Positions 6,130-42,892 of a stretch of 64,000 bases of DNA are shown here, piece by piece. The notes beneath the pieces were generated by a model. It was not told the origin of the DNA, ran no database searches, and worked only from the letters and a program-made list of their open reading frames with translations. Origin of the DNA: Macrostomum lignano (taxonomy: Eukaryota); assembly GCA_002269645.1 (NCBI GenBank), contig NIVC01001600.1, forward strand, positions 124,001 through 188,000, in the 5' to 3' direction. The translations under genes were made by a program, and so were the position numbers. The stretch's first letter is position 1. Each line of letters starts with the position of its first letter.

Positions 6130-6495
6130 ATAGTCTCCAACTCTATGGACTTCAAAGCTTCAAACTCTGGCACTATAGTCAAGAAGATGGCACAGTACCA
6201 GATTTGGAAAAAATCTATATATTGTCTTCTGTGCACTATTTCTATGCTTATAAATTCTATCTAATAAAACACAGAAATTAACATTTTAGAACTGTAACCC
6301 ACATTAACAAACAAGTATATACTTTACAAAAAAAATAGCCAAAAAAGGTTTATGCCAATTGCATCAAGGCCCCTTGTATGCACCAGAATGTTCCATGCCC
6401 AAGGACATCCTTACTATAGCCTTGCATTAAAAATGAAAACATTTTAATCCTAATTAGATTAGATTCAAAAGTGCTTAATAACCCAAGGTGTCAAA

Positions 6496-9400
6496 ATGGG
6501 TCTCCAGCTTGCAGTGATGGACGACTCCAATGCTAGCAGCAGCTCTCCACCCCTGTCAAGCAAAGACCCGTCCGACTGCTTAGAGAAGGAGCGCTACGCC
6601 AGAGAGAGTCACTGTGAGATTGAGCGTCGCAGACGGAACAAAATGACGGCTTATATTAACGAACTGTGCGACATGGTGCCCAGTTGTACCAGTTTAGCTC
6701 GCAAGCCGGATAAACTCACTATTCTAAGAATGGCCGTCACCCATATGAAAGGTCTTAGAGGCGTTGGCAACACTGGCACAGGCGGCTCGGACGCTTATAA
6801 ACCATCGTTTCTCAGCGATCAAGAGTTGAAGCACCTCATACTGGAGGCGGCCGATGGCTTCCTGTTTGTTTGCCAATGCGACACTGGTCAGATTGTCTAC
6901 GTTAGCGACTCTGTAGGGCCCGTGCTAGGTTGCTCCCAGGCCGACTGGCTGCAGCGGAGTCTCTACGATCTGGTGCATCCCGACGACTGCGAACGGATTC
7001 GAGATCAATTGTCGCCCACCGATGCAGCTGGGGCAAGGATACTCGATCTCAAAACTGGCACCGTGAAGAAGGACGGCCATCACGGTTAGTGCTGGGTGAC
7101 TTTGTCGGTGTCAAATGGTGTCACCTTATGTGTCAGGTGGTGTCACCTCAGGAGTGTCAGATGGTGTCACTTCAGGAGTGTCAGGTGGTGTCACCTCAGG
7201 AGTGTCAGGTGGTGTCACCTCAGGAGTGTCAGGTGGTGTCACCTCAGGAGTGTCAGATGGTGTCACCTCAGGAGTGTCAGATGGTGTCACCTCAGGAGTG
7301 TCAGGTGGTGTCACCTCAGGAGTGTCAGGTGGTGTCACCTCAGGAGTGTCAGGTGGTGTCACCTCAGGAGTGTCAGATGGTGTCACCTCAGGAGTGTCAG
7401 ATGGTGTCACCTCAGGAGTGTCAGGTGGTGTCACCTCAGGAGTGTCAGGTGGTGTCACCTCAGGAGTGTCAGATGGTGTCACCTCAGGAGTGTCAGGTGG
7501 TGTCACCTCAGGAGTGTCAGATGGTGTCACCTCAGGATGGTGTCACATCAGGAGTGTCAGGTGGTGTCACCTTGAGTGTCAGGTGGTGTCACCTCAGGAG
7601 TGTCAGATGGTGTTACTTCAGGATGGTGTCACCTCAGGAGTGTCAGATAGTGTCACCTCAGTAGTGTCAGATAGTGTCGCCTCAGGAGTGTCAGATGGTG
7701 TCACCTCAGGAGTGTCAGATGGTGTCACCTCAGGAGTGTCAGGTGGTGTCACCTCAGGAGTGTCAGATGGTGTCACCTCAGGAGTGTCAGATGGTGTTAC
7801 TTCAGGAGTGTCAGGAGGTGTCACCTCAGGAGTGTCAGATGGTGTCACCTCAGGAGTGTCAGATGGTGTCACCTCAGGAGTGTCAGATGGTGTCACCTCA
7901 GGAGTGTCAGATGGTGTCACCTCAGGAGTGTCAGATGGTGTCACCTCAGGAGTGTCAGGTGGTGTCACCTCAGGAGTGTCAGATGGTGTCACCTCAGGAG
8001 TGTCAGATGGTGTCACCTCAGGAGTGTCAGATGGTGTCACCTCAGGATGGTGTCACATCAGGAGTGTCAGGTGGTGTCACCTCAGGATGGTGTCACATCA
8101 GGAGTGTCAGGTGGTGTCACCTTGAGTGTCAGGTGGTGTCACCTCAGGAGTGTCAGATGGTGTCACCTTGAGTGTCAGATGGTGTCACCTCAGGAGTGTC
8201 AGGTGGTGTCACCTTGAGTGTCAGGTGGTGTCACCTCAGGAGTGTCAGATGGTGTCACCTCAGGATGGTGTCACATCAGGAGTGTCAGGTGGTGTCACCT
8301 CAGGATGGTGTCACATCAGGAGTGTCAGGTGGTGTCACCTTGAGTGTCAGGTGGTGTCACCTCAGGAGTGTCAGATGGTGTCACCTCAGGATGGTGTCAC
8401 ATCAGGAGTGTCAGGTGGTGTCACCTCAGGATGGTGTCACATCAGGAGTGTCAGGTGGTGTCACCTTGAGTGTCAGGTGGTGTCACCTCAGGAGTGTCAG
8501 ATGGTGTCACCTTGAGTGTCAGATGGTGTCACCTCAGGAGTGTCAGGTGGTGTCACCTTGAGTGTCAGGTGGTGTCACCTCAGGAGTGTCAGATGGTGTC
8601 ACCTTGAGTGTCAGATGGTGTCACCTTGAGTGTCAGATGGTATAACATCAGGGATTTCAGATGGTGTCACCACAGAAGTTTCAACTGGTGTCACTTTCTG
8701 GATTTTAAAGTTGATGTTGGTTAACTCAAACATCTATGACCTCCACAATGCACCCTACACGCAGCCCCCCCCCCCCAACTATATTTGGCAGCCCAAATGC
8801 GCAGCACAATGGGCGCCAGGCGCGCTTTTATCTGCCGGATGCGCGTTGGCGCGGGCGGTCCCGCCGCAGCGGCCTCGGCCGGCGCGGTGAACAGCCTCTC
8901 TGATCCAATGTCGGCTGCGGCTTGTCCCCAGCAGTCCCTGCCGACTGTTCGCATGAGGCAGCGCAACATGCTCGGCCCCTGTCCAGACGGGCATCATTAC
9001 GCTGTTACTCACGTGACAGGCTATTTGAAGAATTGGCCAAGTCATCAGCATCAGCAGCGGGTAAAATATAGTTCCAAGAAAGCTTAGCCTTAATCTGTTT
9101 TCTGCTTTAAGTTTCTTTTATAAATATAGATTTTCTTGAAAATTACGTGTCAATCTCCAAGAAACTTGGATTTAGTTTTCAAAAGTAACTCGCTGTTGTT
9201 TTCCAATAAGCTCCTGTTTCGGTTTCTAAGAAAACCGAGTTTCTGTTTCTATGAAAATCTAGTGTCGCTTTCTAAGAAAATCTAGTGTCGCTTTCTAAGA
9301 AAATCGTGTTTTAATACCTAAGAAACTCGAGTGCCGGTCTCTAAGAAAAATAACGTCTCGGTTTCCAAGAAACTTGTGTCGGTTTCTAAGAAAATCGAGT

Positions 9401-11914
9401 GTCGGTTTCTAAGAAGTGTCTCGTTTTCCAAGAAAAATTTGGCTGTTTCTAAGAAAATCGGGTCTCGGTTTCCAAAAATGCGTTTTCTGATTTCTGAGAA
9501 AATCGAATGTCGATTTCTAAGAAAATTGCGTGTAAGCTTCTAATAAACTGATTTAATTTTCCTCGGCACAAACAGGGCAACGTACACGCGCCCATGGCGG
9601 AGGACGTGCACCAGCTTCATCATCAGCATCAGCACTATCAGCAGCTTCACCAGCACCCTCATTCTGCCGGCTCGTCGGCATCGACATCCGGAGAATCAAC
9701 CGTCGGCGGCGGCGTCGGAAGCGGCAGCGGCGGAGCAGGCGGGCATCAGTGCCTGGTTGGCATTGCCAGGCTGCAGGTTAGCAACACTACTACTAATTAG
9801 TAATAATTAATAACTAATAATAAATAAATAATAGACGGGCCGTTCATCTCGCTACCGCTGTGTCAGGTTACGTCACTCCCTGGCGGTCCCGGAGGCAGCG
9901 GCAGCGACCTGAGCGCGCACAGTCAGCACGAGTTCGTGGCCAGGCTGTCTGCCGACTCCCGCATCAGCTTCTGCGACCAGCGCACGGCTAACGTGTTGGG
10001 CTACCAGCCGCACGAGTTGCTGGGCAAATTGTTCTTTGATTTGGTGAGTTTAAGTAGCTTTTGAAAGGCTACTGGTGTCGCTTAAGGATACAGAATAAAA
10101 GTACTTTTTTAAACCCTAACCCACTTTTTTTAACTTTAATAACACTAACAAACCTTTTTGGTTTGTTAAAGTTAACACGAGCCCTAATCACCATAACACC
10201 AACCCGAATCACCATAGCACCAACTCTAATCACCATAACACCAACCCGGATCACCATAACACCAACCCTAATCGCCATAACACCAACCCGAATCACCATA
10301 ACACCAACCCGAATCACCATAACACCAACTCTAATCGCCATAACACCAACCCGAATCACCATAACACCAACTCTAATCACCATAACACCAACCCCAATCA
10401 CCATAACACCAACCCGAATCACCATAACACCAACTCTAATCGCCATAACACCAACCCGAATCACCATAACACCAACTCTAATCACCATAACACCAACCCG
10501 AATCACCATAACACCAACCCGAATCACCATAGCACCAACTCTAATCACCATAACACCAACCCGAATCACCATAACACCAACCCTAATCACCATAACACCA
10601 ACCCGGATCACCATAACACCAACCCTAATCGCCATAACACCAACCCGAATCACCATAACACCAACCCTAATCACCATAACACCAACTCTAATCACCATAA
10701 CACCAACCCGGATCACCATAACACGAACCCTAATCACCATAACACCAACCCGAATCACCATAACACCAACCCTAATCACCATAACACCAACTCTAATCAC
10801 CATAACACCAACCCGGATCACCATAACACCAACCCTAATCGCCATAACACCAACCCGAATCACCATAACACCAACCCTAATCACCATAACACCAACTCTA
10901 ATCACCATAACACCAACCCGGATCACCATAACACCAACCCCAATCACCATAACACCAACCTTAATCACCATAACACCAACCCTAATCACCATAACACCAA
11001 CCCTAATCACCATAACACCAACCCCAATCACCATAACACCAACCCGGATTACCATAACACCAATCTTAATCACCATAACACCAACCCCAATCACCATAAC
11101 ACCAACCCCAATCACCATAACACCAACCCTAATCACCATAACACCAACCCCAATCACCATAACACCAACCCTAATCACCATAACACCAACCCCAATCACC
11201 ATAACACCAACCCCAATCACCATAACACCAACCTCAATCACCATAACACCAATCTTAATAAGCATAACACCAACCCGAATCACCATAACCTCCAATCCCA
11301 CCCAGGTGGCCACGCCCGAGGAGCAAGCGGCGCTCAGGTCAGCATTTGACTCGGCCGCCTCCGCCAAAGGCGCACCCCAGACAGCTCTGGTCCGCCTTAC
11401 TACTGGTGCCAACCAGACTGAACCGGTTCTGCTCCGCTGCTGCCTGGCAGCATTTCACAATCCTTACTCCGGCGAGTTCGAGTTCTTTGTCTGCACCTGT
11501 ACATCGGCTAAGAGCTTGCACGATGCTCAGCAGGCGGCAGCTAATCAGTTCTACAGTTACGAGTCTTCTGCTTCTGCTGCTCCAACGAACGCAACCGATG
11601 AGACAACGCCTGTGGCTCAACAAGCCGCTGGTTCCAGTCAGCAGATTGTGTCCGACAATAATTCCATGTGGTTTAGCAGCAGTGCCACCGAAGATTATTG
11701 TTGGACATCTGCTTCTTATCAGCCCTACCAGCAGCAGCTTCAGCCCCAGCCTGGTGAATTTCATCATCCTGACGATCGACAGCTGATGCTTATGCAGCAG
11801 CAGCAGCAACATCATGAGTATTACACAGCTGCCTATGGTCACAGTATGCCAATGATGATGTCCTATCAACAGCATCAGCAGCATTCCGCTGGCACTGATC
11901 CTTCCTTGCCCTAG
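6496..11914 (+). CDS. ARNT: Aryl hydrocarbon receptor nuclear translocator (ARNT/tango), bHLH-PAS; exons 6496-7084, 8792-9060, 9576-9776, 9867-10043, 11306-11914 (1845 nt, 614 aa)
   Basis: b[69 protein letters not shown]...DLVHPDD and [20 protein letters not shown] precedes [14 protein letters not shown]...[14 protein letters not shown]. All four introns are GT-AG with matching phases. The true start could be further upstream, since CTCCAG at 6502-6507 could be an acceptor. Confidence 0.93.
7090..8690. repeat. 24-bp minisatellite GGTGTCACCTCAGGAGTGTCAG(A/G)T in ARNT intron 1
   Basis: Directly visible tandem array with degenerate edges; accounts for the [23 protein letters not shown] ORFs. 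Confidence 0.97.
9225..9530. repeat. Degenerate ~22-bp repeat (TTTCTAAGAAAATCGAGTGTCGG-like) in ARNT intron 2
   Basis: Recurring TTTCTAAGAAAA core with diverged spacers. Confidence 0.7.
10180..11290. repeat. 21-bp minisatellite ATCACCATAACACCAACCC(G/T)A in ARNT intron 4
   Basis: Tandem array; gives the [14 protein letters not shown] pseudo-ORFs. Confidence 0.97.
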
Positions 11915-13860: not shown

Positions 13861-13942
13861 AGAGACTGCGATTGAAAGCCGAACATTCGAAGGTAAATGC
13901 CCTCAACTATTCTATTTTATGCAGCAACAGCTTGTTGTTGTC

Positions 13943-16900
13943 ATGGCAACAGCACTGGCTGTCAATCAACCATCGGCTGTTTCAGCTGATTTTCGCAGCC
14001 AGGAACTGCAGCAGCAGCAATGGAAGCTGAAGCGACTCCTTCGCGCACTGGACAGAGTCCGCGGTCACAATGGCACCAGTCTGATCACCCTGCTGGTGCC
14101 GCCGCAGCACCCGTTGAGTCGGCCAGCCAAGCTGCTAGCCGAGGAGATTGGAGCAGCTGGGAACATTAAATCGCGTGCCAATCGACTGGCTGTGTTGTGG
14201 GCCCTGGCCTCGGTGCAGCAGCGTCTGAAGGTGTACAGTCGGGTGCCAGACAATGGCCTTGTGATCTTCTGTGGGACTATTGTCACGGAGGCTGGGAAAG
14301 AGAAAAAGGTTGGGTTAGAGTTCTTATTGATGTTATTATATGTAGCCGATATGTATCGATAAATTGCGTAAGTAGCCGATATGTATCGATAAATTACGAT
14401 AAGTAGCCGATATGTATCAATAATTTACGTAAGTAGCCGGTATGTATCGATTAAACACTGAAGTAGCTGATATGTATCGATTAAACACTGAAGTAGCCGA
14501 TATGTATCGATTAACCACTGAAGTAGCTGATATGTATCGATTAAACACTGAAGTAGCCGATATGTATCGATTAACAGTAACAGCTGATATGTATCGATTA
14601 AACACTGAAGTAGCCGATATGTATCGATTAACCACTGAAGTAGCCGATATGTATCGATTAACCACTGAAGTAGCCGATATGTATCGATTAAACACTGAAG
14701 TAGCCGGTATGTATCGATTAAACACTGAAGTAGCCGATATGTATCGATTAAACACTGAAGTAGCCGATATGTATCGATTAAACACTGAAGTAGCCGGTAT
14801 GTATCGATTAAACACTGAAGTAGCCGATATGTATCGATTAAACACTAAAGTAGCCGGTATGTATCGATTAAACACTGAAGTAGCCGATATGTATCGAAAG
14901 TGAATTTATTAGAAAATAAGAAATCGCGACCCCCTTCCCCCACATACCCAGGTAACAATAGACTTGGAGCCGTGCAAACCTGTCCAATCGCCCATCTACC
15001 TGTGCGACAGCCGGTTCCACACAGAGGCGCTGCAGTCGATGCTGGAAACTGACGAGCGCAAGTTCGGCTTCATCGTGCTGGACGGCTCTGGCGCCCTCTT
15101 CGCTGTGCTGAGCGGCTCCGAGCGCCGGGTGCTGCACCGAATGTCGGTCGAGTTGCCCAGGAAACACGGCCGAGGCGGACAGTCCGCCGTCCGGTTTGCC
15201 CGTATCCGATTGGAGAAGCGGCATAATTATTTGCGCAAAGTGGCCGAACTCGCGTCCGGACTGTTTCTGGAGCCGGACAGCGGCCGGCCGGCCGGCCGTG
15301 GACGGACTTGTTTTAGCCGGGTCGGCCTCAAAGTTGAATTGCAGCAGGGCGGCCTGCTGGATGCCAGACTCGCTGGCAAGGTTGGTTACTGGGGCGGAAA
15401 TATGAAGAGAGCGGCGGAAATATGAAGTGAGGGGCGGAAATATGAAGTGAGGGGCGGAAATATTAAGTGAGGGGCGGAAATATAAAGAGAGGGGGCGGAA
15501 AGATGAAGTGAGTGGCGGAAATATGAAGAGAGCGGCGAAGTGATGTTTAGAGAGGGGGCGGAAAGATAGAGAGGCGGAAAGATAAAGAGAGGGGCGGAAA
15601 GATAATTAGCGGGGCGGAAAGATAATTAAGTTGGGTGGAAAGAAGAAGAGAGGGTGCCGGTAAGATAAAGAAAGGGGCGGAAAGATAAAGAAAGGGGCGG
15701 AAAGATGAAGAGAGGGTGGCGGAAAGATGAACAGAGGGGCGGAAAGATGAAGAGAGGGGCGGAAAGATAAAGAGAGGGGCGGAAAGATGAAGAGAGGGCG
15801 GAAAGATGAAGAGAGGAGCGGAAAGATGAAGAGAGGGGCGGAAAGATGAAGAGAGGGGCGGAAAGATGAAGAGAGGGGCGGAAAGATGAAGAGAGGGGCG
15901 GAAAGATGAAGAGAGGGGCAGAAAGATGAAGAGAGGGTGGAAAGATGAAGAAAGGGGCGGAAAGATGAAGAGAGGGGCGGAAAGATGAAAGGAGGGCGGA
16001 AAGATGAAGAGAGGTGGCGGAAAGATGAAGAGAGGGGCGGAAAGATGAAGAAAGGGGCGGAAAGATGAAGAAAGGGGCGGAAAGATGAAGAGAGGGGCGG
16101 AAAGATGAAGAGAGGGGCGGAAAGATGAAGAGAGGGGCGGAAAGATGAAGAGAGGGGCGGAAAGATGAAAGGAGGGCGGAAATATGAAGAAAGGGGCGGA
16201 AAGATGAAGAAAGGGGCGGAAAGATGAAGAAAGGGGCGGAAAGATGAAGAGAGGGGCGGAAAGATGAAGAGAGGGGCGGAAAGAAAACGATTAAAGATTA
16301 GGATATATCAAAGAGGACTGTAGGAGTGCAGCAAACAATACACCAGCATATAAATACAAATGCATGTCTAATCTACATGTCCAGACACTCCAGGTGGTGG
16401 ACATAGCCTACGGCGGTGAGGTCGGCCTCAACCAGGCCATTGAGCTGGCCTCAGACTGTTTAACTGGCCTGGCCTATCTAGAAGAAAAGCGCTGCCTAGC
16501 CAGACTATTCGAAGAATTGGGTCACGGCCGGCAGCAGCTGGTTTGCTACGGTGTTGGGCAGACTGTGGCCGCACTAGAATCTGGCGCGGTGGACACTGTG
16601 CTAGCCTGGGAGGAGCTGCCCTACAACTGCGTGCTGACCGCCAGCCGGCAGCTGAAGCTGATTCCTAGGCAAGCCTGTCGGAGTGCTGCTGGCGGTCAGC
16701 ATGGAGATGGTGTAGAGGTCACCGACTGCGGCCTGGATGAGCCGAGGCCGCTGATCGACTGGCTGGCAGATGCGGGCTGCCCGGCGGCCGGGGCTCAGCT
16801 GCGCGTGCTGGCCTGCCGCAGCCCCGAGGGAGTGCAGTTTGCCAACGGCTTCGGCGGCCTCGCTGGCCTGCTGCGGTACCCGCTGGACTGGGAGGTGAGG

Positions 16901-18303
16901 GAGCTGCGTGTGTCTGTGTGTGTCAGTGTGTGTCTGCCTGCTGTGTCTGTCTGTGTCTGTCTGTTGTGTGTGCCTGCTGTGTCTACTGTTCCTGCCTGCT
17001 GTGTCTGTCTGTGTGTGCCTGCTGTGTCTACTGTTCCTGCCTGCTGTGTCTGTCTGTGTGTGCCTGCTTGTCTACTGTTCCTGCCTGCTGTGTCTGTCTG
17101 TGTGTGCCTGCTTGTCTACTGTTCCTGCCTGCTGTGTCTGTCTGTGTGTGCCTGCTGTGTCTGTCTGTGTGTGCCTGCTTGTCTACTGTTCCTGCCTGCT
17201 GTGTCTGTCTGTGTGTGCCTGCTGTGTCTGTCTGTGTGTGCCTGCTTGTCTACTGTTCCTGCCTGCTGTGTCTGTCTGTGTGTGCCTGCTGTGTCTACTG
17301 TTCCTGCCTGCTGTGTCTGTCTGTGTGTGCCTGCTTGTCTACTGTTCCTGCCTGCTGTGTCTGTCTGTGTGTGCCTGCTTGTCTACTGTTCCTGCCTGCT
17401 GTGTCTGTCTGTGTGTGCCTGCTTGTCTACTGTTCCTGCCTGCTGTGTCTGTCTGTGTGTGCCTGCTGTGTCTGTCTGTGTGTGCCTGCTTGTCTACTGT
17501 TCCTGCCTGCTGTGTCTGTCTGTGTGTGCCTGCTTGTCTACTGTTCCTGCCTGCTGTGTCTGTGTCTGCCTGCTGTGTCTGTCTGTGTCTGTCTGTGTCT
17601 GCCTGCTGTGTCTATCTGTGTCGGCCTGTTGTGTCTGTCTGTGTGTGCCTGCTGTGTCTGCTGTTCCTGTCTGTGTGTCTGCTGTTCCTGCCTGCTGTGT
17701 CTGTCTGTGTGTCTGCTGTTACTGTTTGTTGTGTCTGCTATTCCTGTCTATGTGTGTCTGCTGTTCCTGCCTGCTGTGTCTGTCTGTGTGTCTGCTGTGT
17801 CTGTCTGTGTGTCTGCTGTGTCTGTCTGTGTGTCTGCTGTGTCTGTCTGTGTGTCTGCTGTGTCTGTCTGTGTGTCTGTCTGTGTGTCTGCTGTGTCTGT
17901 CTGTGTGTGTCTTCTGTTTGCTGTTTTTGAAGAAGCAACATATGTCTGCCTTCTGTGTGTCTATTTGTTTTTCTCAGTGTCTTTTTAGCATCAGAATCGC
18001 AAAATACCATGGGCATCCTGTGTCCGAATTTAGGTTGCCAAATTAAAAACCAGAATCCCAGCAGGCATCGGTCAAAAAGTTCAAAACCATACTCTGCAGT
18101 CTTCAGAATTTATGCTTACAGATTACTCAAAATGTAGATTCTGACTCTCTTCAATCATTTATCAACAGTCCCATCTCTCGTCGTTTCTTATCCCAATCCA
18201 GGATCCGGAGTCGCTCCAGTCTGGTGCACAAACCGACGCTGAAGCGGTCGCGGATGAGGATGCAAGCGACGTCTACGACTGCTTCGATCTAGGCGACTAC
18301 TAG
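13943..18303 (+). CDS. eRF1: Divergent eukaryotic peptide chain release factor 1 (eRF1/ETF1-like) paralog; exons 13943-14308, 14952-15380, 16385-16894, 18202-18303 (1407 nt, 468 aa)
   Basis: Motifs [56 protein letters not shown] and C-terminal FDLGDY* (human FDLDDY). All introns are GT-AG, phase 0. The start is ATG 13943 or in-frame ATG 13919. The reading frame is open, but 11 residues at 15294-15326 are scrambled by compensating frameshifts, so a pseudogene or assembly error cannot be excluded. Confidence 0.88.
14345..14895. repeat. 30-bp minisatellite AGTAGCCGATATGTATCGATTAAACACTGA in eRF1-like intron 1
   Basis: Tandem array; each unit has the quasi-palindrome CGATA-TG-TATCG. Confidence 0.97.
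15393..16285. repeat. 20-bp purine-rich minisatellite GGGGCGGAAAGATGAAGAGA in eRF1-like intron 2
   Basis: About 44 copies beginning 12 nt after the donor. Confidence 0.97.
16905..17910. repeat. Complex TG/CTG-rich repeat (~44-bp higher unit) in eRF1-like intron 3
   Basis: Visible low-complexity array; gives the Cys/Val/Leu-rich pseudo-ORFs. Confidence 0.93.
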
Positions 18304-21806: not shown

Positions 21807-24800
21807 ATAGAGAGAGAGAGAGATGGCAGAGAAATAGAGAGAGATGGCAGAGAAATAGAGAGATGGCAGAGAAATAGAGAGAGATGGCAGGGATCTATAG
21901 AGAGAGATGGCAGAGAAATAGAGAGATGGCAGAGAAATAGAGAGAGAGACGGCAGAGAACTAGAGAGAGAGGGATGGCAGAGAAATAGAGAGATGGCAGA
22001 GAAATAGAGAGAGAGACGGCAGAGAACTAGAGAGAGAGGGATGGCAGAGAAATAGAGAGAGATGGCAGAGATATAGAGAGAGATGGCAGAGAAATAGAGA
22101 GAGAGACGGCAGAGAACTAGAGAGAGAGGGATGACAGAGAAATTGAGAGATGGCAGAGAAATAGAGAGATGGCAGAGAAATAGAGAGATGGCAGAGAAAT
22201 AGAGAGATGGCAGAGAAATAGAGAGATGGCAGAGAAATAGAGAGAGAGACGGCAGAGAACTAGAGAGAGAGGGATGGCAGAGATATATAGAGACAGATGG
22301 CAGAGATATATAGAGAGAGATGGCGGAGAACTAGAGAGAGATGGCAGAGAAATAGAGAGAGAGAAGAGGGCAGAGATATAGAGAGAGATGGCAGAGAAAT
22401 AGAGAGAGAGAATAGGGCAGAGATATAGAGAGAGATGGCAGAGAAATAGAGAGAGAGAATAGGGCAGAGATATAGAGAGAGATGGCGGAGAACTAGAGAG
22501 AGATGGCAGAGAAATAGAGAGAGATGGCAGAGATATAGAGAGAGATGGCAGAGAAATAGAGAGAGATGGCAGAGAAATAGAGAGGGACGGCAGAGATATA
22601 GAGAGAGAGATGGCAGAGATATAGAGAGAGATGGCAGAGAAATAGAGAGAGAGATGGCAGAGATATAGAGAGAGATGGCAGAGATATAGAGAGAGATGGG
22701 AGAGAAATAGAGAGAGATGGCAGAGATATAGAGAGAGATGGCAGAGAAATAGAGAGAGAGATGGCAGAGAAATAGAGAGAGATGGCAGAGATATAGAGAG
22801 AGATGGGAGAGAAATAGAGAGAGATGGCAGAGAAATAGAGAGAGATGGCAGAGATATAGAGAGAGAGATGGCAGAGAAATAGAGAGAGATGGCAGAGATA
22901 TAGAGAGAGATGGCAGAGAAATAGAGAGAGATGGGAGAGAAATAGAGAGAGAGATGGCAGAGAAATAGAGAGAGATGGCAGAGATATAGAGAGAGAGATG
23001 GCAGAGAAATAGAGAGAAATAGAGAGAGATGGCAGAGAAATAGAGAAATAGAGAGAGATGGCAGAGAAATAGAGAGAGATGGCAGAGAAATAGAGAGAGA
23101 GATGGCAGAGAAATAGAGAGAGATGGCAGAGAAATAGAGAGAGATGGCAGAGATATAGAGATATAGAGAGAGATGGCAGAGATATAGAGAGAGATGGCAG
23201 AGAAATAGAGAGAGATGGCAGAGAAATAGAGAGAGATGGCAGAGAAATAGAGAGAGATGGCAGAGAAATAGAGAGAGATGGCAGAGAAATAGAGAGAGAT
23301 GGCAGAGAAATAGAGAAATAGAGAGAGATGGCAGAGAAATAGAGAGAGATGGCAGAGATATAGAGAGAGAGATGGCAGAGAAATAGAGAGAGATGGCAGA
23401 GATATAGAGAGAGATGGCAGAGAAATAGAGAGATGGCAGAGAAATAGAGAGAGAGATGGCAGAGAAATAGAGAGAGATGGCAGAGAAATAGAGAGAGATG
23501 GCAGAGATATAGAGATATAGAGAGAGATGGCAGAGATATAGAGATATAGAGAGAGATGGCAGAGAAATAGAGAGAGATGGCAGAGAAATAGAGAGAGATG
23601 GCAGAGAAATAGAGAGAGATGGCAGAGAAATAGAGAGAGATGGCAGAGAAATAGAGAGAGATGGCAGAGAAATAGAGAGAGATGGCAGAGATATAGAGAG
23701 AGATGGCAGAGATATAGAGATATAGAGAGAGATGGCAGAGATATAGAGATATAGAGAGAGATGGCAGAGAAATAGAGAGAGATGGCAGAGAAATAGAGAA
23801 ATAGAGAGAGATGGCAGAGAAAGAGAGAGAGATGGCAGAGAAATAGAGAAATAGAGAGAGATGGCAGAGAAATAGAGAAATAGAGAGAGATGGCAGAGAA
23901 ATAGAGAAATAGAGAGAGATGGCAGAGAAATAGAGAGAGATGGCAGAGATATAGAGAGAGATGGCAGAGATATAGAGAGAGATGGCAGAGATATAGAGAG
24001 AGATGGCAGAGAAATAGAGAGAGATGGCAGAGAAATAGAGAGAGATGGCAGAGAAATAGAGAGAGATGGCAGAGAAATAGAGAGAGATGGCAGAGAAATA
24101 GAGAAATAGAGAGAGATGGCAGAGAAATAGAGAAATAGAGAGAGATGGCAGAGAAATAGAGAGAGAGATGGCAGAGATATAGAGAGAGAGAGATGGCAGA
24201 GATATAGAGAGAGATGGCAGAGAAATAGAGAAAGATGGCAGAGAAATAGAGAGAGAGATGGCAGAGAAATAGAGAGAGATGGCAGAGAAATAGAGAGAGA
24301 GATGGCAGAGATATAGAGAGAGAGATGGCAGAGATATAGAGAGAGATGGCAGAGATATAGAGAGAGATGGCAGAGATATAGAGAGAGATGGCAGAGAAAT
24401 AGAGAGAGAGATGGCAGAGATATAGAGAGAGATGGCGGAGAACTAGAGAGAGATGGCAGAGAAATAGAGAGAGAGATGTCAGAGATATAGAGAGAGATGG
24501 CAGAGAAATAGAGAGAGATGGCAGAGAAATAGAGAGAGATGGCAGAGATATAGAGAGAGATGGCAGAGATATAGAGAAATAGAGAGAGATGGCAGAGAAA
24601 TAGAGAGAGATGGCAGAGAAATAGAGAGAGATGGCAGAGATATAGAGAGAGATGGCAGAGATATAGAGAGAGAGATGGCAGAGATATAGAGAGAGATGGC
24701 AGAGATATAGAGAGAGATGGCAGAGATATAGAGAGAGATGGCAGAGAAATAGAGAGAGAGATGGCAGAGATATAGAGAGAGATGGCGGAGAACTAGAGAG

Positions 24801-25875
24801 AGATGGCAGAGAAATAGAGAGAGAGATGGCAGAGAAATAGAGAGAGATGGCAGAGAAATAGAGAGAGATGGCAGAGAAATAGAGAGAGATGGCAGAGATA
24901 TAGAGAGAGAGATGGCAGAGATATAGAGAAATAGAGAGAGATGGCAGAGAAATAGAGAGAGATGGCAGAGAAATAGAGAGAGATGGCAGAGATATAGAGA
25001 GAGATGGCAGAGATATAGAGAGAGATGGCAGAGATATAGAGAGAGATGGCAGAGAAATAGAGAGAGATGGCAGAGAAATAGAGAGAGATGGCAGAGAAAT
25101 AGAGAGAGATGGCAGAGAAATAGAGAGAGATGGCAGAGAAATAGAGAGGGACGGCAGAGAAATAGAGAAATAGAGAGAGATGGCAGAGAAATAGAGAGAG
25201 AGATGGCAGAGATATAGAGATATAGAGAGAGATGGCAGAGAAATAGAGAGAGATGGCAGAGAAATAGAGAAATAGAGAGAGATGGCAGAGATATAGAGAA
25301 ATAGAGAGAGATGGCAGAGAAATAGAGAAATAGAGAGAGATGGCAGAGAAATAGAGAGAGATGGCAGAGAAATAGAGAAATAGAGAGAGATGGCAGAGAA
25401 ATAGAGAGAGAGATGGCAGAGATATAGAGATATAGAGAGAGATGGCAGAGATATAGAGAAATAGAGAGAGATGGCAGAGAAATAGAGAAATAGAGAGAGA
25501 TGGCAGAGAAATAGAGAGAGATGGCAGAGAAATAGAGAAATAGAGAGAGATGGCAGGGATATAGAGAGAGATGGCAGAGATATAGAGAGAGAGATGGCAG
25601 AGATATAGAGAAATAGAGAGAGATGGCAGAGAAATAGAGAAATAGAGAGAGATGGCAGAGATATAGAGAAATAGAGAGAGATGGCAGAGAAATAGAGAGA
25701 GACGGCAGAGAAATAGAGAGAGATGGCAGAGAAATAGAGAGAGACGGCAGAGAAATAGAGAGAGATGGCAGAGAAATAGAGAGAGATGGCATCATGGCAG
25801 AGAAATAGAGTGAGATGGCATCATGGCAGAGATATATAGAGAGAGATGGCATCATGGCAGAGATATATAGAGTGA
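21807..25875. repeat. ~4-kb purine-rich satellite (GAGAGAGATGGCAGAGA(A/T)ATA, ~19-23 bp)
   Basis: Largest array in the window, with strong purine strand bias. Confidence 0.97.
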
Positions 25876-32684: not shown

Positions 32685-35153
32685 TTAGAAGGGCAAAAAG
32701 GAAGATAAAATAGCATAGTGTTTACCTGCAATTATGTCTACAAATACTGGTGGATGGAGAAATTTGTGTACTGGATCAATAATATTAACTTGTGATGTTG
32801 GTTTACAATAAAAAGTAAAGTATGATGGCAAAAAAATGGAATTGTAATTTTTTGTTACCAAAAGCCACTTGCCCTTAATGCATATAATTTTAAAAAGTGA
32901 TGATAGGGTTAGATCATAGCAATCATCAAAGTCTTGATGTTTACTTTGAAAAATAATCATTGACTTGTACTTAGTTGGAGCTTTAAACTCTAATGACCCT
33001 ATTTTTAAACTACTTGCTACAATACAATCCTTAGGCATATCATTTATACTAGGCAACTGCAAATAACTAGCAATGGTTTCGATTGTTTGAAAATCAAAAA
33101 GATTAACAAGTGATACTTGCTGTAAATTTGAAGCCAATGGAACATCAAATTCAACAGTAGACATTGTAATAGCTTGATGCAGTTGAAACCTTTGTGCTGC
33201 TGTTGCACATACATTTTTAAAGCAACGTACTATAGGTATTATTTTTTTAAAGTACTGATGGATTGACTCAAATCTCATTGTCCATGCTACTTTCAATCCA
33301 TTATACATAGGGATTAGGTCTGGATAATGCAACATATAATGGAGTTTACATTTTTTTGATAATTGATTGTTTGATACTTTGTATATTAGGTTATTATGTT
33401 CATTTATTAAGGTAGCAATATAGTCTGAATTGTGTTCTTCTTCATCTAAAGTTGATAATAAAATGGCCAGAACTTCACAATGTATTAATAGAAGATTCAT
33501 GATATCATACTTAATTGGATTATTACTGGAAAGAACATAAGGCCCAAAATATAGAGGCATTCGATGGATAATGTGAATCATATCTGCTGCACAGAATAGC
33601 AATCTATTATTGTTGATGTGTGCTGGCAAAAGAGAAGGCATTGAGACAGGGAAAAGTTTGAAAAGCCTTTTGATATTATCAAAATTTAGGATTTTGTGCC
33701 TTAATAAGAATTTAATAGCAAGACAAGCAACGAAGTGTGATGTACCTTCTAGTAAATCATGAAAAAAATCTGGGGGGAAAAAGTAAGGCATGGTAACATA
33801 TCCAAGACCATTGAATGGACAGTTTTGCTTAAATCCAGTTTGAATGCTAATGTCCCAGCTATCATCTCTACTTAAGTCATCATGCTTAGTTAGACAAAAA
33901 TCAATGTCAGTAGCCTTTGCAATACAAAATCTACATGCTTGGCCTGATACAAAATTTGTCCCAAGTCCAACAAGTGAATTAATTGATAGGTTGTCACCAG
34001 TACATAAACATGCAATAACTGGAACATTTATTTTTTCCCCATTTAAAGCTTCAAATGTAATTCCATAGTCATACAGATTATTCAATTCTTCAATCAAAGG
34101 AGAATATAGCTCTTCAAGGTTGAGGATATTATCTTGAATAATTTTATATTTTACTAAGCAAGCTAAAAAGAAACACTTTTCTTGAGATGCAATTTTCTTT
34201 GGCAGATTTAAAATTCGATAGTAAATTGCATAAATTTTATGCTTACACCTAGCTTTACCAATTGGGTTTGCCACTTCAAATTCATCTGTATATAGTGCAA
34301 GATAAATAGCATCTTTAGGGTCATTTTCAATTAATGGTTTGATATAATTTTCAAAGTATGGACTAGAAAAGAAAGGTGATTTTTCCTTTAATTCCCCAGT
34401 AAAAATCATAGATTGAAAATATTTATTTTGTAAAACTGAAGAAATATTGCTTTTGATTGGAATATAAACAATACTATTCCTATTAAATAATGGTACTTCA
34501 ATAGGTTCAACAAATTGATAATGCCCTTTAATAAAACTTAACAACTGTGAATCACTTTCTAATATTTCAAGGCAAGTATCAAAGAATGATTCTAATTGCA
34601 AGAAATCTTGGACCCCTTGGATGGTTTTATTTGGAATACCTTTTTCTTTCAGGAATTGACAAATGGTTGATAGATATAATATACTAAAGGAAGAAAAAAT
34701 GCCTTTTACTTGTAAACTTAATGACCTTGCTGTACTATTTGGTAAGCTGAAATAATCTCTAGCTTGAAAATAAAACTTTGCCATGTTGCAACCACTGTTT
34801 GATTTTAACTTTTCTTTCAATTCCCATGCAGATGATTCTGGCCTGGCTAGTGCTAACATAGAAACAGGAGGTCTAACTAGGTTTGATAAATCTCTAGACC
34901 CTTCTTGGTTTTTAAATTCAGCATGTACAAGCTGGTTTTGCTCAATGTCAATAGGCATATTTATTGTAGAAGATCCAGTCAGTAAGTGTTCATTCATATG
35001 CATATCATTGGCACTGGCTTGATTGCTAGGACTTATGTCTGTAACATCAAATTGAAATGGCTCAGTTAAGCTTTGACTTAGGATAGGCCCTAGTATCACT
35101 GTGGAACCTAGAAATATGCTTGATAGTGGCTTCTTTCGAGGATGAAAATACAA
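32685..35153 (-). CDS. CACTA/EnSpm-type transposase (822-aa open frame)
   Basis: Motifs LYTDEFEVANPIG..KHKI, TGDNL, CRFC, PPDFFHDLLEG, KLHYMLHYP, WTMRFESIHQYFK; uninterrupted frame between matching TIRs. Confidence 0.9.
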   Translation of the reverse strand: MYFHPRKKPLSSIFLGSTVILGPILSQSLTEPFQFDVTDISPSNQASANDMHMNEHLLTGSSTINMPIDIEQNQLVHAEFKNQEGSRDLSNLVRPPVSMLALARPESSAWELKEKLKSNSGCNMAKFYFQARDYFSLPNSTARSLSLQVKGIFSSFSILYLSTICQFLKEKGIPNKTIQGVQDFLQLESFFDTCLEILESDSQLLSFIKGHYQFVEPIEVPLFNRNSIVYIPIKSNISSVLQNKYFQSMIFTGELKEKSPFFSSPYFENYIKPLIENDPKDAIYLALYTDEFEVANPIGKARCKHKIYAIYYRILNLPKKIASQEKCFFLACLVKYKIIQDNILNLEELYSPLIEELNNLYDYGITFEALNGEKINVPVIACLCTGDNLSINSLVGLGTNFVSGQACRFCIAKATDIDFCLTKHDDLSRDDSWDISIQTGFKQNCPFNGLGYVTMPYFFPPDFFHDLLEGTSHFVACLAIKFLLRHKILNFDNIKRLFKLFPVSMPSLLPAHINNNRLLFCAADMIHIIHRMPLYFGPYVLSSNNPIKYDIMNLLLIHCEVLAILLSTLDEEEHNSDYIATLINEHNNLIYKVSNNQLSKKCKLHYMLHYPDLIPMYNGLKVAWTMRFESIHQYFKKIIPIVRCFKNVCATAAQRFQLHQAITMSTVEFDVPLASNLQQVSLVNLFDFQTIETIASYLQLPSINDMPKDCIVASSLKIGSLEFKAPTKYKSMIIFQSKHQDFDDCYDLTLSSLFKIICIKGKWLLVTKNYNSIFLPSYFTFYCKPTSQVNIIDPVHKFLHPPVFVDIIAGKHYAILSSFLPF

Positions 35154-35316
35154 AACAATTCTGTAATGGACACTGAAACTTCAGTTGAATTTCAGCTGAC
35201 CTAGTGGACAAGAGAGGACAATAATGGCAATAATGCTTTAAAAACTGGGATAAAGAAGTGCTCTTACAACCACATTTACATGTGAACATGGACAAGGAGT
35301 TATGACTTGCCATCAT
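35062..35316 (-). CDS. N-terminal C2H2-like zinc-finger segment of the transposase, in a different frame
   Basis: CKCGCKSTSLSQFLKHYCH and CPLQNC...IKHISRFH. It overlaps the transposase ORF by ~90 nt and would join by a frameshift or a short intron. Confidence 0.6.
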   Translation of the reverse strand: MMASHNSLSMFTCKCGCKSTSLSQFLKHYCHYCPLLSTRSAEIQLKFQCPLQNCFVFSSSKEATIKHISRFHSDTRAYPKSKLN

Positions 35317-40260: not shown

Positions 40261-41036
40261 ATATTTTTGGCTGCTTCTAGCCTGAGAACTAAAAAGTAAA
40301 AAAGTCAAATTATCTGGCACAATCCCTTAATTTTTCGAGCTCCGGTCCCCTCCCTGACGCCGCTTCCCAAGCCTCTGACGCCCTGACAACAAGAAAAATG
40401 GGACGCGCGGCGGGGTGTTGCAAAACTTTCCGTGCTGCTGCTGAAGGATTACCGCCGGTTTAGTACCATCAACAATCGTACATAGCAACCGGAAGCCTAA
40501 CGCGGATCTGACTCCCCTCCCTATAGATCCTGGCTTTTATATTCCCAAAATTTTATCGCTAATTCCATAAAAATTTTATTGAATTCTGCAGCAGCAGCAG
40601 CTGGAAGGCATGCAACAACAGGGCACGAGAAAGGTGATGCCCCATTGCCCTTATCTTTTTTCCCCAATCTTGTCTGCATGCTTTTGGATTGCTTGCTGCA
40701 GTTTTGCAGTCTGTATAAGTATATGTTAACTACCAATAGGTGGCACATACCTTATATAGAGCTTTTGACACTGTCATTGCGTTATAATGTCGCATATGAC
40801 ACTTGTGCCTCTTGGATACTTATCAGTTATTTGTTTATACAAAACCGATATTTTACCCGAGCGGCAAACCCATAGGATGCATAAAATTATAACATGTAAC
40901 TACGAGCGTATATTCACGTAAAATGTAAATGTGAACTGTCATAGAGTGATCCTCATGAACTGTGAGTGATCCTCATGATCCTCTCGTTGCCAACCAACTT
41001 GTCCTTGACGAAGTCCATCTGCGGAATGCCCTGCGC

Positions 41037-41933
41037 TTACCGCACCGTCTTCTTGTTCAGCTCGCGGTAATCGATCGTCAACCGCAGGTCACCGTTCTTC
41101 ATCCGCACGTACACTGGGGTCGCCACGTACGGGCTGTCCGACTCCTCGATGACGTCATTGTCCAGCAGTTCCTGAATCAGCTTCCTCACCTCGGGCTCCC
41201 AGTGCACCGGCAGCTTCCTCGGCGGGATCCGCACCGGAACATCGTCAGTCAGCGGGATGCTGTGCTCGTGTCGATCCGTCAGCCCTGGCCGCCTGGTGAA
41301 AATGTCGCTGAACTCGCGCACCAAAGCTCGGATGTCCGGGTCCTCCGCGACTGGCAGGTCGATCTTGGTGAAATCCGGCACCAGCTACTCTTCAATGTCC
41401 TCGAACTGACTGTCAGCATCGAGGTGACTCACGCCGTTGATCACACAAGAGTCCTTTGATGGGGTCTCTGCTGCACTGTCGCTGAAGTCCAGGCACATGT
41501 TGCAGGCCTTGATGAAGTCCAGCCCGATGATGACGGCAGCAACCAGACCTTCAGACACGTAAAACGGGTGCCGCCGCTCGATGCCGCCGAGCGACACTGC
41601 CAGGCTGGCCACCTGCCGCACCGGCACCGCCTGCTGGTTGACTGCCCGCAGCTCCAGGTGCACGCTCTCCAGCTGAGCTGGCCGCATGCTCTGCAGGACC
41701 CGCTTGTCCACGATTGACACCTGGCTGCCTGAGTCGATAAGCGCCGTGACGTCTGCGCCTCCGATCCTGCACTGCAGCTTGGATGTCGCCGAGTTCGGCC
41801 TGATGACGACTGCCGCTGCGCTGCTGCTGGCTGCACCGCTCCCCTCTGCGCCCAGGAACAACCCACTCACGCTGGGGCCCGCGCTCAGAACTGGCCAGGG
41901 GTGCGGGCTCTGCCCCGGCCTGTGCCGTTTCCC
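41037..41933 (-). pseudogene. Gypsy pol (protease + N-terminal RT), interrupted by in-frame TAG (41387-41385) and TAA (41039-41037), then truncated
   Basis: ORFs 41385-42026 and 41037-41381 share a frame separated by one stop. The frame is -1 relative to gag. Confidence 0.88.
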
Positions 41934-42673
41934 GACGGCTGATTGCAGTTCCTGGCGATGTGGCCGCGGCGGTGGCAGTTCCAGCAGGTCACCTCGCGCT
42001 GTCTCCTCGCACTGCGAATCACGCAAGAGTCCGAAACCTCTGAGCCCAGCTTCGCCGCCAGGTCTTGGACGGTCGCCTGCAGCGAGCTGACCGCAGCCCG
42101 CAGTTCTGCCGTCTCCGCACTGCCTGCAGCTCCGGCTGCCGCTGCAAGAGGCTGCTTGAATCCGTCCGTGGTGGCAGAAGGCAGCTCCAGTAGTTGTGCC
42201 CGTGCGAGAGCGTCACTCACGGTCTTGGCTGACGCGTCCGCTCTGATCTGCTTGCTGATGTCCACCGGCAGTCCGCGAATGAACTGGTGAGTCAGCATGG
42301 TGGCCGTTGCGCCTGCCTCGCTGATGCCAGCGTCCTTTAGCAGCTGCTTCAGGTGATAGAGAAAGAGCCGAGGAGATTCGCCCGGCAGCAGCTTCCGGCT
42401 CTCGAATGCATCCAGCGCTGAGAATTGCTGGCTGTCCGGGTGAAATGCCTGGCTCAGAGCTTTGGTCACTTTGCTGTAGTCGCTCTTGCTATTCTCGTCG
42501 AGCTCAAGAAAAACAGCCAGAGCCTCACCATCCAAAAACGTTGGCAGGTGCAAATGCTTGTCATTTACCCACTTGTTGGCTGCCGCGCACAGCTCAAACC
42601 GCTGGAGCCACTCCTTAAAGTTGCCTGAGCTGAACGCCCTAGGAATCGCACGGTGACTGCCGCCCTCTGCCAC
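41885..42673 (-). CDS. Gypsy gag with CCHC zinc knuckle; first plausible codon is GTG (42673)
   Basis: FKEWLQRFELCAAANKW...LPTFLDGEAL...QFIRGLP...CX2CX4HX4C. There is no ATG between the PBS and the conserved region. Confidence 0.8.
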   Translation of the reverse strand: MAEGGSHRAIPRAFSSGNFKEWLQRFELCAAANKWVNDKHLHLPTFLDGEALAVFLELDENSKSDYSKVTKALSQAFHPDSQQFSALDAFESRKLLPGESPRLFLYHLKQLLKDAGISEAGATATMLTHQFIRGLPVDISKQIRADASAKTVSDALARAQLLELPSATTDGFKQPLAAAAGAAGSAETAELRAAVSSLQATVQDLAAKLGSEVSDSCVIRSARRQREVTCWNCHRRGHIARNCNQPSGNGTGRGRARTPGQF

Positions 42674-42677
42674 AGTA

Positions 42678-42690
42678 CGCTCTGCTACCA
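42678..42690 (-). promoter_or_regulatory. Primer-binding site complementary to the 3' end of initiator tRNA-Met
   Basis: TGGTAGCAGAG(CG) lies 2 nt after the LTR end; animal tRNA-iMet ends ...CUCUGCUACCA. Confidence 0.85.
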
Positions 42691-42892
42691 CTTGTAACAC
42701 GCGGTATTTGGCAGCACCAAAAACACGAAGGCCCCGTGAGGCAGTGATTGCTTTATTTATGCAAGTTGAAGTTAAGCCTGCGATGTACATAGAGAGCGAA
42801 CGTACATTAAATCAATACGATGATTCAGCTAATTATTTGTCACGATTGCTAACAGTTCAGACTGTCTCCAAGGCAAGGAATAAAATATTACA

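Follow-up and report, generated by a model that had tools for sequence, protein, structure and literature searches.

The release factor eRF1 is among the most conserved animal proteins and is usually described as the sole reader of all three stop codons. Its GILRY region and C-terminal acidic tail are its eRF3-binding elements. Lineage-specific duplicates are known, such as the three Arabidopsis eRF1 genes and eRF1a and eRF1b of Euplotes, and these remain close to the canonical sequence. Variant-code ciliate eRF1s, UAR-only in Euplotes and UGA-only in Paramecium and Stylonychia, are ~50% identical to human eRF1, and in Stylonychia positions 122 to 124 are reportedly altered. Pelota (Dom34), an ancient paralogue of eRF1, belongs to the same superfamily, with M and C domain folds like those of eRF1, lacks GGQ and NIKS, and provides a precedent for eRF1 duplicates that acquired new roles in ribosome rescue. 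The literature searched described no diverged second class-1 release factor in animals. Within the N domain, N61, K63, E55, T32, Y125, and C127 bond the stop codon, T58 and S60 line the stop-codon pocket, and N129 and K130 face away (PMC4605324). Ala70 is the Euplotes-type residue, and in human eRF1 the S70A substitution lowers UGA efficiency 2.4-fold without eRF3 and 1.3-fold with eRF3 (PMC3025575). T58 is altered in the UGA-only eRF1 of the ciliate Paramecium (PMC5681627).

The stretch of Macrostomum lignano DNA analyzed here (assembly Mlig_3_7, with 100% identity to contig NIVC01001600.1 over 24,364 nt; 64,000 nucleotides, hereafter the window) contains an eRF1-family gene of four exons encoding 468 amino acids at positions 13943-18303 of the forward strand (GenBank BOX15_Mlig026666g1). 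An earlier, sequence-only reading had recognized an eRF1 homologue here, and tblastn, PDB, and Pfam matches agree with that identification. The span it gave, 13943-15060, does take in the N domain but ends early in exon 2, beyond exon 1 and intron 1, and leaves out the rest of the gene. Against human eRF1 (tblastn, with the motif numbering of the query checked), exons 1 to 3 are 57%, 56%, and 37% identical, with E values of 9e-39, 2e-48, and 3e-30. All introns run GT..AG in phase 0, and the reading frame closes with TAG. GenBank gene models for M. lignano derive from RNA-seq, and their boundaries were placed using trans-splicing reads (PMC5730564). The protein of an intact sister copy of the gene (P0001) begins LVVVM, precisely at the base after the AG at 13929..13930. 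The parts of the window copy are as follows.

13929..13930, + strand: putative AG acceptor for spliced-leader trans-splicing, 12 nt ahead of the ATG, inferred for this copy from the sister copy
13943..14308, + strand: exon 1, codons 1-122, N domain
14063-14080, + strand: GHNGTS, in exon 1, N domain
14153-14173, + strand: AAGNIKS, in exon 1, N domain
within 14174-14200, + strand: A66, A70, and W73, in exon 1, which also holds the E55 equivalent
14309..14951, + strand: intron 1, GT..AG, phase 0, 86% of it a 30-nt minisatellite
14952..15380, + strand: exon 2, codons 123-265, last part of the N domain followed by the M domain
14988-15017, + strand: 10-residue N-domain segment, in exon 2
15174-15182, + strand: GGQ, in exon 2, M domain, aligned with human 183-185
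15282..15297, + strand: (GGCC)4 run, one GGCC unit (+4 nt) more than the (GGCC)3 of the intact sister copies
15294..15329, + strand: out-of-frame stretch of 12 codons, the frame being regained by loss of GACT between 15327 and 15328
15381..16384, + strand: intron 2, GT..AG, phase 0, 89% of it a 20-nt minisatellite
16385..16894, + strand: exon 3, codons 266-435, C domain, with an 11-residue segment at 16847-16879
16895..18201, + strand: intron 3, GT..AG, phase 0, 73% of it a 44/67-nt minisatellite
18202..18303, + strand: exon 4, codons 436-468 and the TAG stop, acidic tail ending YDCFDLGDY (18274-18300)

Profile searches place the gene in the eRF1 family. The window copy scores 66.2, 104.3, and 62.0 bits against Pfam eRF1_1, eRF1_2, and eRF1_3 (cut-offs 23.8, 27.1, and 25.8), where canonical animal eRF1s reach 93-100, 155-166, and 114-122 bits. 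Against TIGR03676 (aRF1_eRF1; cut-off 234.7) it scores 312.4 bits, and 332 bits were obtained both for P0001 and for P0004, a protein encoded by a cDNA from another Macrostomum sample; canonical proteins reach 428-438 bits, ~100 bits above the divergent ones. P0001, the closest M. lignano copy at 96% identity to the window protein, has eRF1 structures alone as its best PDB matches (E 1e-132). Identity as Pelota was rejected: TIGR00111 gave 25.5 bits, for P0004 only, against a cut-off of 177.65, and the divergent Macrostomum protein differs from Pelota in retaining GGQ and NIKS.

Like canonical eRF1/ETF1 (human; PDB 1DT9, 3E1Y, 5LZT), the protein has three domains with GGQ, NIKS, GTS, E55, YxCxxxF, GFGG, and an acidic tail; its C-domain mini-domain, in contrast, is re-made, and its tail is longer. 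The motifs listed from the DNA alone are all kept (human numbering: GTS 31-33, E55, NIKS 61-64, Y125/C127/F131, GGQ 183-185, GFGG, and YDCFDLGDY). The codon-contact set of NIKS (N61, K63), E55, GTS (T32), and Y125/C127/F131 agrees residue for residue with human eRF1 in the window copy, P0001, and P0004, and GGQ aligns with human 183-185 in all M. lignano copies and P0004. In the C domain, the 11-residue segment lies where human eRF1 has GFGGIGGILRY, and the tail YDCFDLGDY is kept in both species; both are putative eRF3-binding elements. Retention of the fold signature, GGQ, T32, E55, N61, K63, Y125, C127, GLLRY/GFGG, and the acidic tail makes it most likely that the protein is still a class-1 release factor.

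Divergence elsewhere is extreme. Identity to human eRF1 is 49-51%, whereas 112 other animal eRF1s have a median of 84% and those of cestodes and trematodes stand at 77-79%, a divergence well past the usual rate of the lineage. Both divergent proteins carry replacements at 73 of 260 positions (~28%) that are invariant in five diverse animal eRF1s, and at 56 of 72 replaced invariant positions the new residue is the same in both. Where such a replacement altered codon GC, it was raised in 49 of 53 cases and lowered in four (p = 7e-11). Accordingly skewed amino acid usage was seen, with GARP residues at 32-34% and FYMINK at 14-15%, compared to 20-24% and 27-30% in canonical eRF1; GC3 of neighboring exons is similar. 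Compared with mammalian ARNT, the ARNT gene lying 2 kb upstream reaches 258 bits across 167 residues, and such normal conservation in a neighbor argues that lineage-wide acceleration is absent. Compositional drift under relaxed constraint fits the GC-ward replacements better than designed rewiring, a warning that substitutions at "specificity" positions can come from drift and are not necessarily adaptive. The eRF1 locus of Echinococcus multilocularis, compared with this one, had no neighbors in common and no matching intron positions.

We consider it rather likely that the window gene is the "B" homeologue of a Macrostomum-lineage eRF1 that drifted to ~50% identity with all other animal eRF1s, a duplicate that is constrained, probably functional in its A copies, and impaired in B. 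In this scenario, an eRF1 gene, probably a duplicate of canonical ETF1, would have been freed from the usual extreme constraint; GC-directed substitution pressure would have replaced ~28% of otherwise animal-invariant positions; and the gene would later have come under purifying selection. Its product would enter the A site with eRF3 and promote peptidyl-tRNA hydrolysis, probably on all three stop codons, while A58 and G60, the smaller residues lining the pocket, may shift how efficiently it acts or which context it prefers. This function would fall to the two intact A copies; in B, the weakest of the three M. lignano copies, the +4/-4 pair rewrites a buried M-domain strand beside the GGQ domain core. 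Status as a paralog is argued from rate alone, no canonical M. lignano eRF1 being among the matches listed. As with the plant and ciliate duplicates, there is more than one eRF1-family gene per genome through lineage-specific duplication; the Macrostomum gene differs in being highly divergent, and the three M. lignano copies found stand to each other as homeologues and do not form canonical/divergent pairs. With ~28% of pan-animal invariant positions replaced under purifying selection, including two pocket residues of TASNIKS, the lineage amounts to a natural mutagenesis experiment on what eRF1 needs for decoding, in an animal in which RNAi and transgenesis are established.

Unlikely, though deserving serious weight, is the alternative hypothesis that this gene is the only eRF1 of Macrostomum, a true ETF1 orthologue that evolved exceptionally fast in the genus and performs all termination. 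In a full-length search with the window protein, M. lignano entries among the matches listed were all of the divergent type. A canonical flatworm profile returned no Macrostomum or triclad names among its best 120 matches, its own query member P0052 also being missing; 50%-identity representatives included no canonical M. lignano eRF1, the divergent proteins being merged there with canonical clusters; and ten canonical 90% clusters had no Macrostomum member. This absence of a canonical M. lignano eRF1 from the named matches of the full-length, representative, and ten-cluster lists favors a sole eRF1, as does the divergent type of all M. lignano eRF1 proteins retrieved from UniRef and NCBI. However, the lists comprised the best 120-150 matches and omitted even P0052, a member of the query profile, so that a somewhat divergent canonical copy would escape and could have been missed. 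Three orphan Logan cDNAs (P0052, P0023, P0040) are from other samples and are without the spliced leader. A sole factor would also be consistent with the retention of every catalytic and codon-bonding residue, strong purifying selection on the N domain, and derived states that the divergent clade has most in common with other flatworm eRF1s. On the other hand, no other animal eRF1 among the matches listed falls below ~72% identity to its nearest named animal relative, no tabulated animal eRF1 falls below 76% to human, and the normal conservation of adjacent ARNT speaks against an accelerated lineage. One of the three copies tolerates a scrambled core strand, and composition has moved far toward mutational equilibrium, which would be unusual for a sole essential factor. 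Were the gene nonetheless the sole eRF1, the case would be equally unusual: an eRF1 could lose over one in four of its invariant residues without giving up termination on the standard code.

If a canonical copy coexists, M. lignano would be a case of an animal with a second, diverged class-1 release factor. We hold it doubtful but conceivable that Macrostomum has such a factor beside an ordinary eRF1, with a remodeled pocket (A58, G60, W73, SP(I/V) at 122-124, and the inserted His) giving a different stop or context preference; it could, for example, be germline- or stem-cell-specific and change readthrough. The sequence-only reading had inferred a second release factor, which is unproven, no canonical M. 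lignano eRF1 being among the matches listed. The N-domain changes on which it built are all present: T58A, S60G, V66A, S70A, G73W, TSL122-124 to SPI, N129S, K130R, and a His before NGTS. As a result the TASNIKS heptapeptide, present in all canonical sequences compared, is not intact and reads AAGNIKS in the window copy, P0001, and P0004. Held in common by M. lignano and the related Macrostomum protein are T58A, S60G, G73W, S/P/(I,V) at 122-124, K130R, and the His insertion, whereas Ala70, Ala66, and Ala76 occur in M. lignano only. The earlier reading had linked Ala70 to UAA/UAG-restricted decoding, reported for Euplotes/human eRF1 chimeras; the link is weakened, as P0004 has Ser70. A UAR-only eRF1 is thus not indicated: Ala70 is found in the M. 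lignano copies but Ser in P0004, and there is no evidence of UGA reassignment. The use of UGA as a stop had itself been read from an "SREBP" exon in the window; this bHLH exon belongs to the ARNT-type bHLH-PAS gene, which ends in TAG, not UGA. Other placeable stops in the 64-kb window are TAG, TAG, and TAA, too few for judging stop usage.

The variant-code ciliates offer a parallel to such a pocket. M. lignano resembles them in its distance from human eRF1 (~50%), in Ala70 (Euplotes), in an altered T58 (Paramecium), and in altered positions 122-124 (Stylonychia, reportedly). It differs in showing no sign of a changed code and in its intact E55, and its replacements follow the general GC-ward trend and are not clustered at decoding sites. 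A specialised factor, whose altered N domain narrows or re-weights stop reading (toward UAA/UAG through Ala70, for example) and so tunes UGA readthrough or selenocysteine insertion, or which competes with eRF1 in particular tissues, appears improbable. It would account for the smaller residues in both divergent proteins at T58 and S60, which line the pocket (PMC4605324), for the parallel with the T58 change in a UGA-only ciliate eRF1 (PMC5681627), for the changes at 122-124 and the His by the GTS loop in both proteins, and for the Euplotes-type A70 of M. lignano (PMC3025575). Yet the related protein lacks A70, A66, and A76, and the effect of S70A in human eRF1 is small and nearly abolished by eRF3 (PMC3025575). 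Moreover, the codon-bonding residues are unchanged, N129 and K130 face away (PMC4605324), the substitutions are GC-ward like those in the rest of the protein, and neither tissue expression data nor a canonical partner were found in the M. lignano literature and match lists. None of this demonstrates altered stop-codon reading by the window copy.

Returning to the homeologue reading, the damage in B becomes apparent when the M. lignano copies are compared. Three syntenic loci, with the genes Mlig016649.g2, Mlig006332.g2, and Mlig026666.g1, each lie downstream of ARNT, and the coding sequences of the two A copies are identical to each other. The window (B) copy is set apart from A by six synonymous and six nonsynonymous substitutions, a single-codon indel, and the +4/-4 pair, and by 2.15% in flanking noncoding DNA. 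All five polarizable nonsynonymous changes fall on the window lineage, which leaves the A lineage without any, an asymmetry based on 12 substitutions. Because of the frameshift pair, 12 residues are scrambled in an M-domain strand that is otherwise conserved universally; a conserved 10-residue strand and turn present in P0001, P0217, and P0004 is absent from the window copy, and five residues lost with the scrambled stretch (A, G, A, D, and F) do not vary among 35 other eRF1s, to which both intact divergent proteins belong. Pfam eRF1_2 gives 104 bits in place of 129. AlphaFold2, run on one and the same alignment, put M-domain confidence at 76-89 for the intact protein and at 36-56 for the window copy, which is weak evidence. 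N-domain confidence was low for both proteins. We therefore regard the window copy as probably a degenerating homeologue, impaired and under relaxed constraint. That the second 4-nt indel restores the frame could mean that the downstream part of the copy is still under selection and the copy maybe not dead.

It is very improbable that the +4/-4 pair arose through an assembly or consensus error in a window copy that is really intact. The extra unit does lie within a short GGCC repeat, and the window assembly and the earlier ML2 assembly are both long-read based and from the same inbred line. However, both events are 4 nt long, whereas long reads typically err by 1 nt in homopolymers. The same scrambled peptide occurs in UniRef model P0002, and a GSASKLN read-through of the deletion occurs in P0006, both models presumably stemming from ML2, which was built independently; the intact P0008, P0219, and P0220 are in UniRef too. 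Furthermore, 12 other coding sites differ, which marks the window copy as a distinct haplotype. For annotation, the lesson is that a compensated frameshift can hide behind an intact open reading frame in one of three near-identical homeologues.

Constraint on the lineage as a whole can be judged from the related Macrostomum sample (SRR28338165). It yielded a spliced-leader-capped cDNA, a 1578-nt intronless Logan contig with the final 26 nt of the spliced leader known from M. lignano and an uninterrupted open reading frame of 486 aa, whose protein (P0004) is 66-69% identical to the M. lignano proteins. Expression had been suggested as a check on the gene, and this trans-spliced mRNA supplies it for the related sample. 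Exact look-up of the full-length M. lignano proteins in Logan transcripts, with and without the spliced-leader-encoded MLVVV, gave no match, and the 90% cluster containing the M. lignano copies had no RNA-derived member. Among the entries listed in supplements of the M. lignano literature, ETF1, release factor, and the three gene IDs were unmatched, eRF3 providing the only entry; the full texts searched contained nothing relevant on a Macrostomum eRF1, the gene, or the SRA run. Between the M. lignano and related proteins, dN/dS is 0.17 overall (N domain, 0.04-0.08; M, 0.10; C, 0.33), values that are only approximate because dS exceeds 1 and is near saturation, and that compare M. lignano with a cDNA which might conceivably come from an old paralogue instead of an orthologue. 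A ratio so far below 1 carries no signal of a decaying relic, the other check that had been suggested, and together with the spliced-leader-capped cDNA it indicates that the lineage is expressed and constrained. The sequence evidence thus supports a divergent eRF1 lineage that is intact, conserved, and not decaying as a family. It is scarcely credible that the whole lineage is a functionless pseudogene family, as very high divergence from canonical eRF1, the drift signature, and one visibly damaged copy might suggest: dN/dS, below 0.1 in the N domain, and the conservation of intact 468-486-codon open reading frames in all copies across a synonymous distance above 1 rule this out, and identical residues at most of the replaced invariant positions, a spliced-leader-capped mature mRNA, and uniformly intact splice sites speak against it as well.

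The plus-strand eRF1-like gene, which the sequence-only reading placed at 13943-15060, reaches far past that span when the region is read and translated. Its exons and its upstream neighbor are as follows.

6463-11914, plus strand, ARNT-type bHLH-PAS gene with a TAG stop (258 bits against mammalian ARNT over bHLH and PAS-A)
13943-14308, plus strand, eRF1-like exon 1
14952-15380, plus strand, eRF1-like exon 2
16385-16894, plus strand, eRF1-like exon 3
18202-18303, plus strand, eRF1-like exon 4, with a TAG stop

The three introns are all GT..AG, phase 0 and 73-89% minisatellite, and the product (PAA65984.1, BOX15_Mlig026666g1) has 468 aa. Exons 1, 2 and 3 were 57%, 56% and 37% identical to human eRF1 by tblastn, with a query whose motif numbering was checked. 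The protein scores above threshold for each of the three Pfam eRF1 domains and reaches 312 bits on the TIGR03676 aRF1/eRF1 equivalog (cut-off 234.7), with family-model scores roughly 100 bits lower than those of canonical animal eRF1s. For the 96% identical protein of a sister copy, the best solved-structure matches are all eRF1 (E 1e-132). A Pelota identity was rejected (25 bits against a cut-off of 177.65). The retained motifs (GTS, E55, NIKS, YxCxxxF, GGQ, GFGG and the YDCFDLGDY tail) are all present, as is every change previously listed in human numbering: T58A, S60G, V66A, S70A, G73W, TSL122-124 to SPI, N129S, K130R and a His before NGTS.

Heavy substitution in a protein that is nearly invariant among animals proved both real and unusual. 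The divergent proteins are 49-51% identical to human eRF1, compared to a median of 84% for other animal eRF1s among the matches listed and 77-79% for fast-evolving cestodes and trematodes. The lineage in general is not hyper-divergent, since the ARNT gene 2 kb upstream keeps a match to mammalian ARNT of 258 bits across 167 residues. A Logan contig from SRR28338165 (1578 nt, intronless) encodes a related protein of 486 aa, 66-69% identical, and its 5' end consists of the final 26 nt of the spliced leader known from M. lignano (PMC8629364). The contig is therefore a mature, trans-spliced mRNA, and its source is a Macrostomum or a very near relative of one. The sequence-only reading looked to a dN/dS below 1 among orthologs; between the related protein and the intact M. 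lignano copy it is 0.17 overall (N domain, 0.04-0.08; M, 0.10; C, 0.33), in a comparison where dS exceeds 1. Five diverse canonical animal eRF1s agree at 260 positions; both divergent proteins have replacements at 73 of these, and at the 72 sites without a gap they carry the same new residue in 56 cases. This lineage has changed greatly and thereafter been held in place; a pseudogene family is rejected by the low dN/dS, the shared replacements and the spliced-leader-capped mRNA. Were the leader joined at the AG (13929-13930), the ATG that ends it (...TTGCATG) would share the reading frame of the gene's own start codon, which lies 12 nt further on (13931-13945). Translation could then begin within the leader and add MLVVV; the leader ATG of the related cDNA is in a different frame.

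The replacements have a direction. At the replaced invariant positions, 49 changes raise the GC content of the codons for the amino acid and 4 lower it (p = 7e-11), and T58A, S60G, V66A, S70A, S123P, N129S and K130R, most of the supposed rewiring, follow the GC-ward course. G/A/R/P content is 32-34% in the divergent proteins versus 20-24% in canonical eRF1, and F/Y/M/I/N/K content 14-15% versus 27-30%. GC3 is 0.62-0.75 in this gene and neighboring exons alike, and non-coding DNA is 34-39% GC. We infer a general GC-ward pressure acting on a gene of relaxed constraint, as would be expected of a redundant duplicate. Among the eRF1s compared, those of other flatworms have the most derived states in common with the divergent clade, which places its origin inside flatworms. 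On rate arguments, a canonical eRF1 probably exists in M. lignano as well, and it is unlikely that the divergent gene is the sole eRF1. No canonical copy appeared among the best 120-150 matches listed, a result of little weight as to absence, given that one member of the query profile was also missing from the list. We found no paper mentioning this gene in the literature on Macrostomum eRF1/ETF1.

In the human termination complex, U1 is bonded by N61 and K63, A2 touches C127, positions 2 and 3 are read by E55, and T32 shuts the pocket at position 3. The codon is lined by the residues from T58 to K63, while N129, K130 and F131 face away (PMC4605324). All codon-bonding residues are identical to human in the divergent proteins. 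Ala70, the headline residue of the sequence-only reading, is its least robust part: it is confined to M. lignano, the related protein having Ser70, and in human eRF1 S70A lowers UGA decoding only 2.4-fold when eRF3 is absent and 1.3-fold when it is present (PMC3025575). From these observations, a factor that is omnipotent or nearly so, possibly with altered efficiency, is to be expected. A UAR-restricted factor is possible. The conserved differences T58A and S60G (a smaller pocket lining), W73, SP(I/V)122-124 and the His beside the GTS loop could be relevant to decoding. The proposed rewired specialist is partly supported: the divergent, constrained lineage stands, and the unchanged bonding residues and the damage to the window copy weaken the remainder.

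M. lignano gave the best database match, and the window agrees at 100% identity with contig NIVC01001600.1 of assembly GCA_002269645.1 across 24,364 nt. Exon structure and upstream neighbor are shared by two other M. lignano genes, BOX15_Mlig016649g2 and BOX15_Mlig006332g2. These two have one and the same coding sequence, from which the window copy is set apart by 6 synonymous changes, 6 nonsynonymous changes and a CAA codon; unique flanking DNA differs by 2.15%. This pattern fits the known redundancy of the DV1 genome, which has additional large chromosomes and duplicated blocks totaling 180 Mb with at least 95% identity (PMC5730564), so the three loci are homeologues or alleles of a single gene, with no canonical/divergent pair among them. 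Homologous minisatellite arrays of varying copy number occur at all three, and introns 1, 2 and 3 measure 643, 1004 and 1307 nt in the window, 465, 699 and 595 nt at sister locus L002, and 14901, 678 and 551 nt at sister locus L006, which lies in NIVC01000695.1. Intron 1 of L006 (10376-25276 of that locus), swollen to 14.9 kb, is mostly tandem repeats of Ser/Leu-coding appearance, and the L006 coding sequence is nevertheless identical to that of L002.

The window holds the damaged homeologue. The (GGCC)3 run in exon 2 of the other copies is (GGCC)4 in this one, and GACT is missing forty-odd bases 3' of it; the pair preserves the reading frame and rewrites 12 residues, including A, G, A, D and F that are invariant in 35 eRF1s, the intact divergent proteins among them. 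The Pfam eRF1_2 score falls from 129 bits in the intact form to 104 bits. With the same alignment, AlphaFold2 confidence in the M domain is 36-56 for the window copy and 76-89 for the intact form, and that in the C domain holds, which lends weak support to the damage. UniRef M. lignano models include both forms (scrambled, P0002 and P0006; intact, P0008, P0219 and P0220); if these derive from the earlier ML2 assembly, as we believe, the damage is unlikely to be an assembly error. When the related cDNA serves as outgroup, all 5 polarizable amino-acid changes fall on the window lineage and 0 on the other, small numbers that fit relaxed constraint on the window copy.

The upstream bHLH exon had been called SREBP and cited for UGA use; the gene is ARNT-type and ends in TAG. 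At both sister loci the eRF1-like gene is labeled g2, which under the naming scheme should denote gene number two in a transcriptional unit, and it may be co-transcribed with ARNT and separated by trans-splicing. About 41% of the window is tandem repeat, with minisatellite units of 12-110 nt in introns and intergenic DNA. Other features are listed below.

7108-8694, 21815-25669, 54014-56860 and 62067-63909, minisatellite arrays (examples)
32688-35180, minus strand, uninterrupted ORF of 831 codons within AT-rich sequence, Transposase_21 (tnp2/CACTA-type; 35.6 bits, cut-off 28.6)
40959-42811, minus strand, gag and reverse-transcriptase-like ORFs, LTR retrotransposon-like by sequence appearance
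52898-58147, plus strand, homeobox gene with an Abd-B/posterior-Hox-like homeodomain, RKKRKPYTRYQTAMLEREF...KVWFQNRRMKRKK

The 831-codon ORF may be an intact DNA transposon; the ORFs at 40959-42811 had no Pfam match at E<=0.001. The homeodomain is interrupted after residue 44 by an intron bearing a 22-nt minisatellite, and 35-nt units form a 2.8-kb array directly upstream of the homeobox exon.
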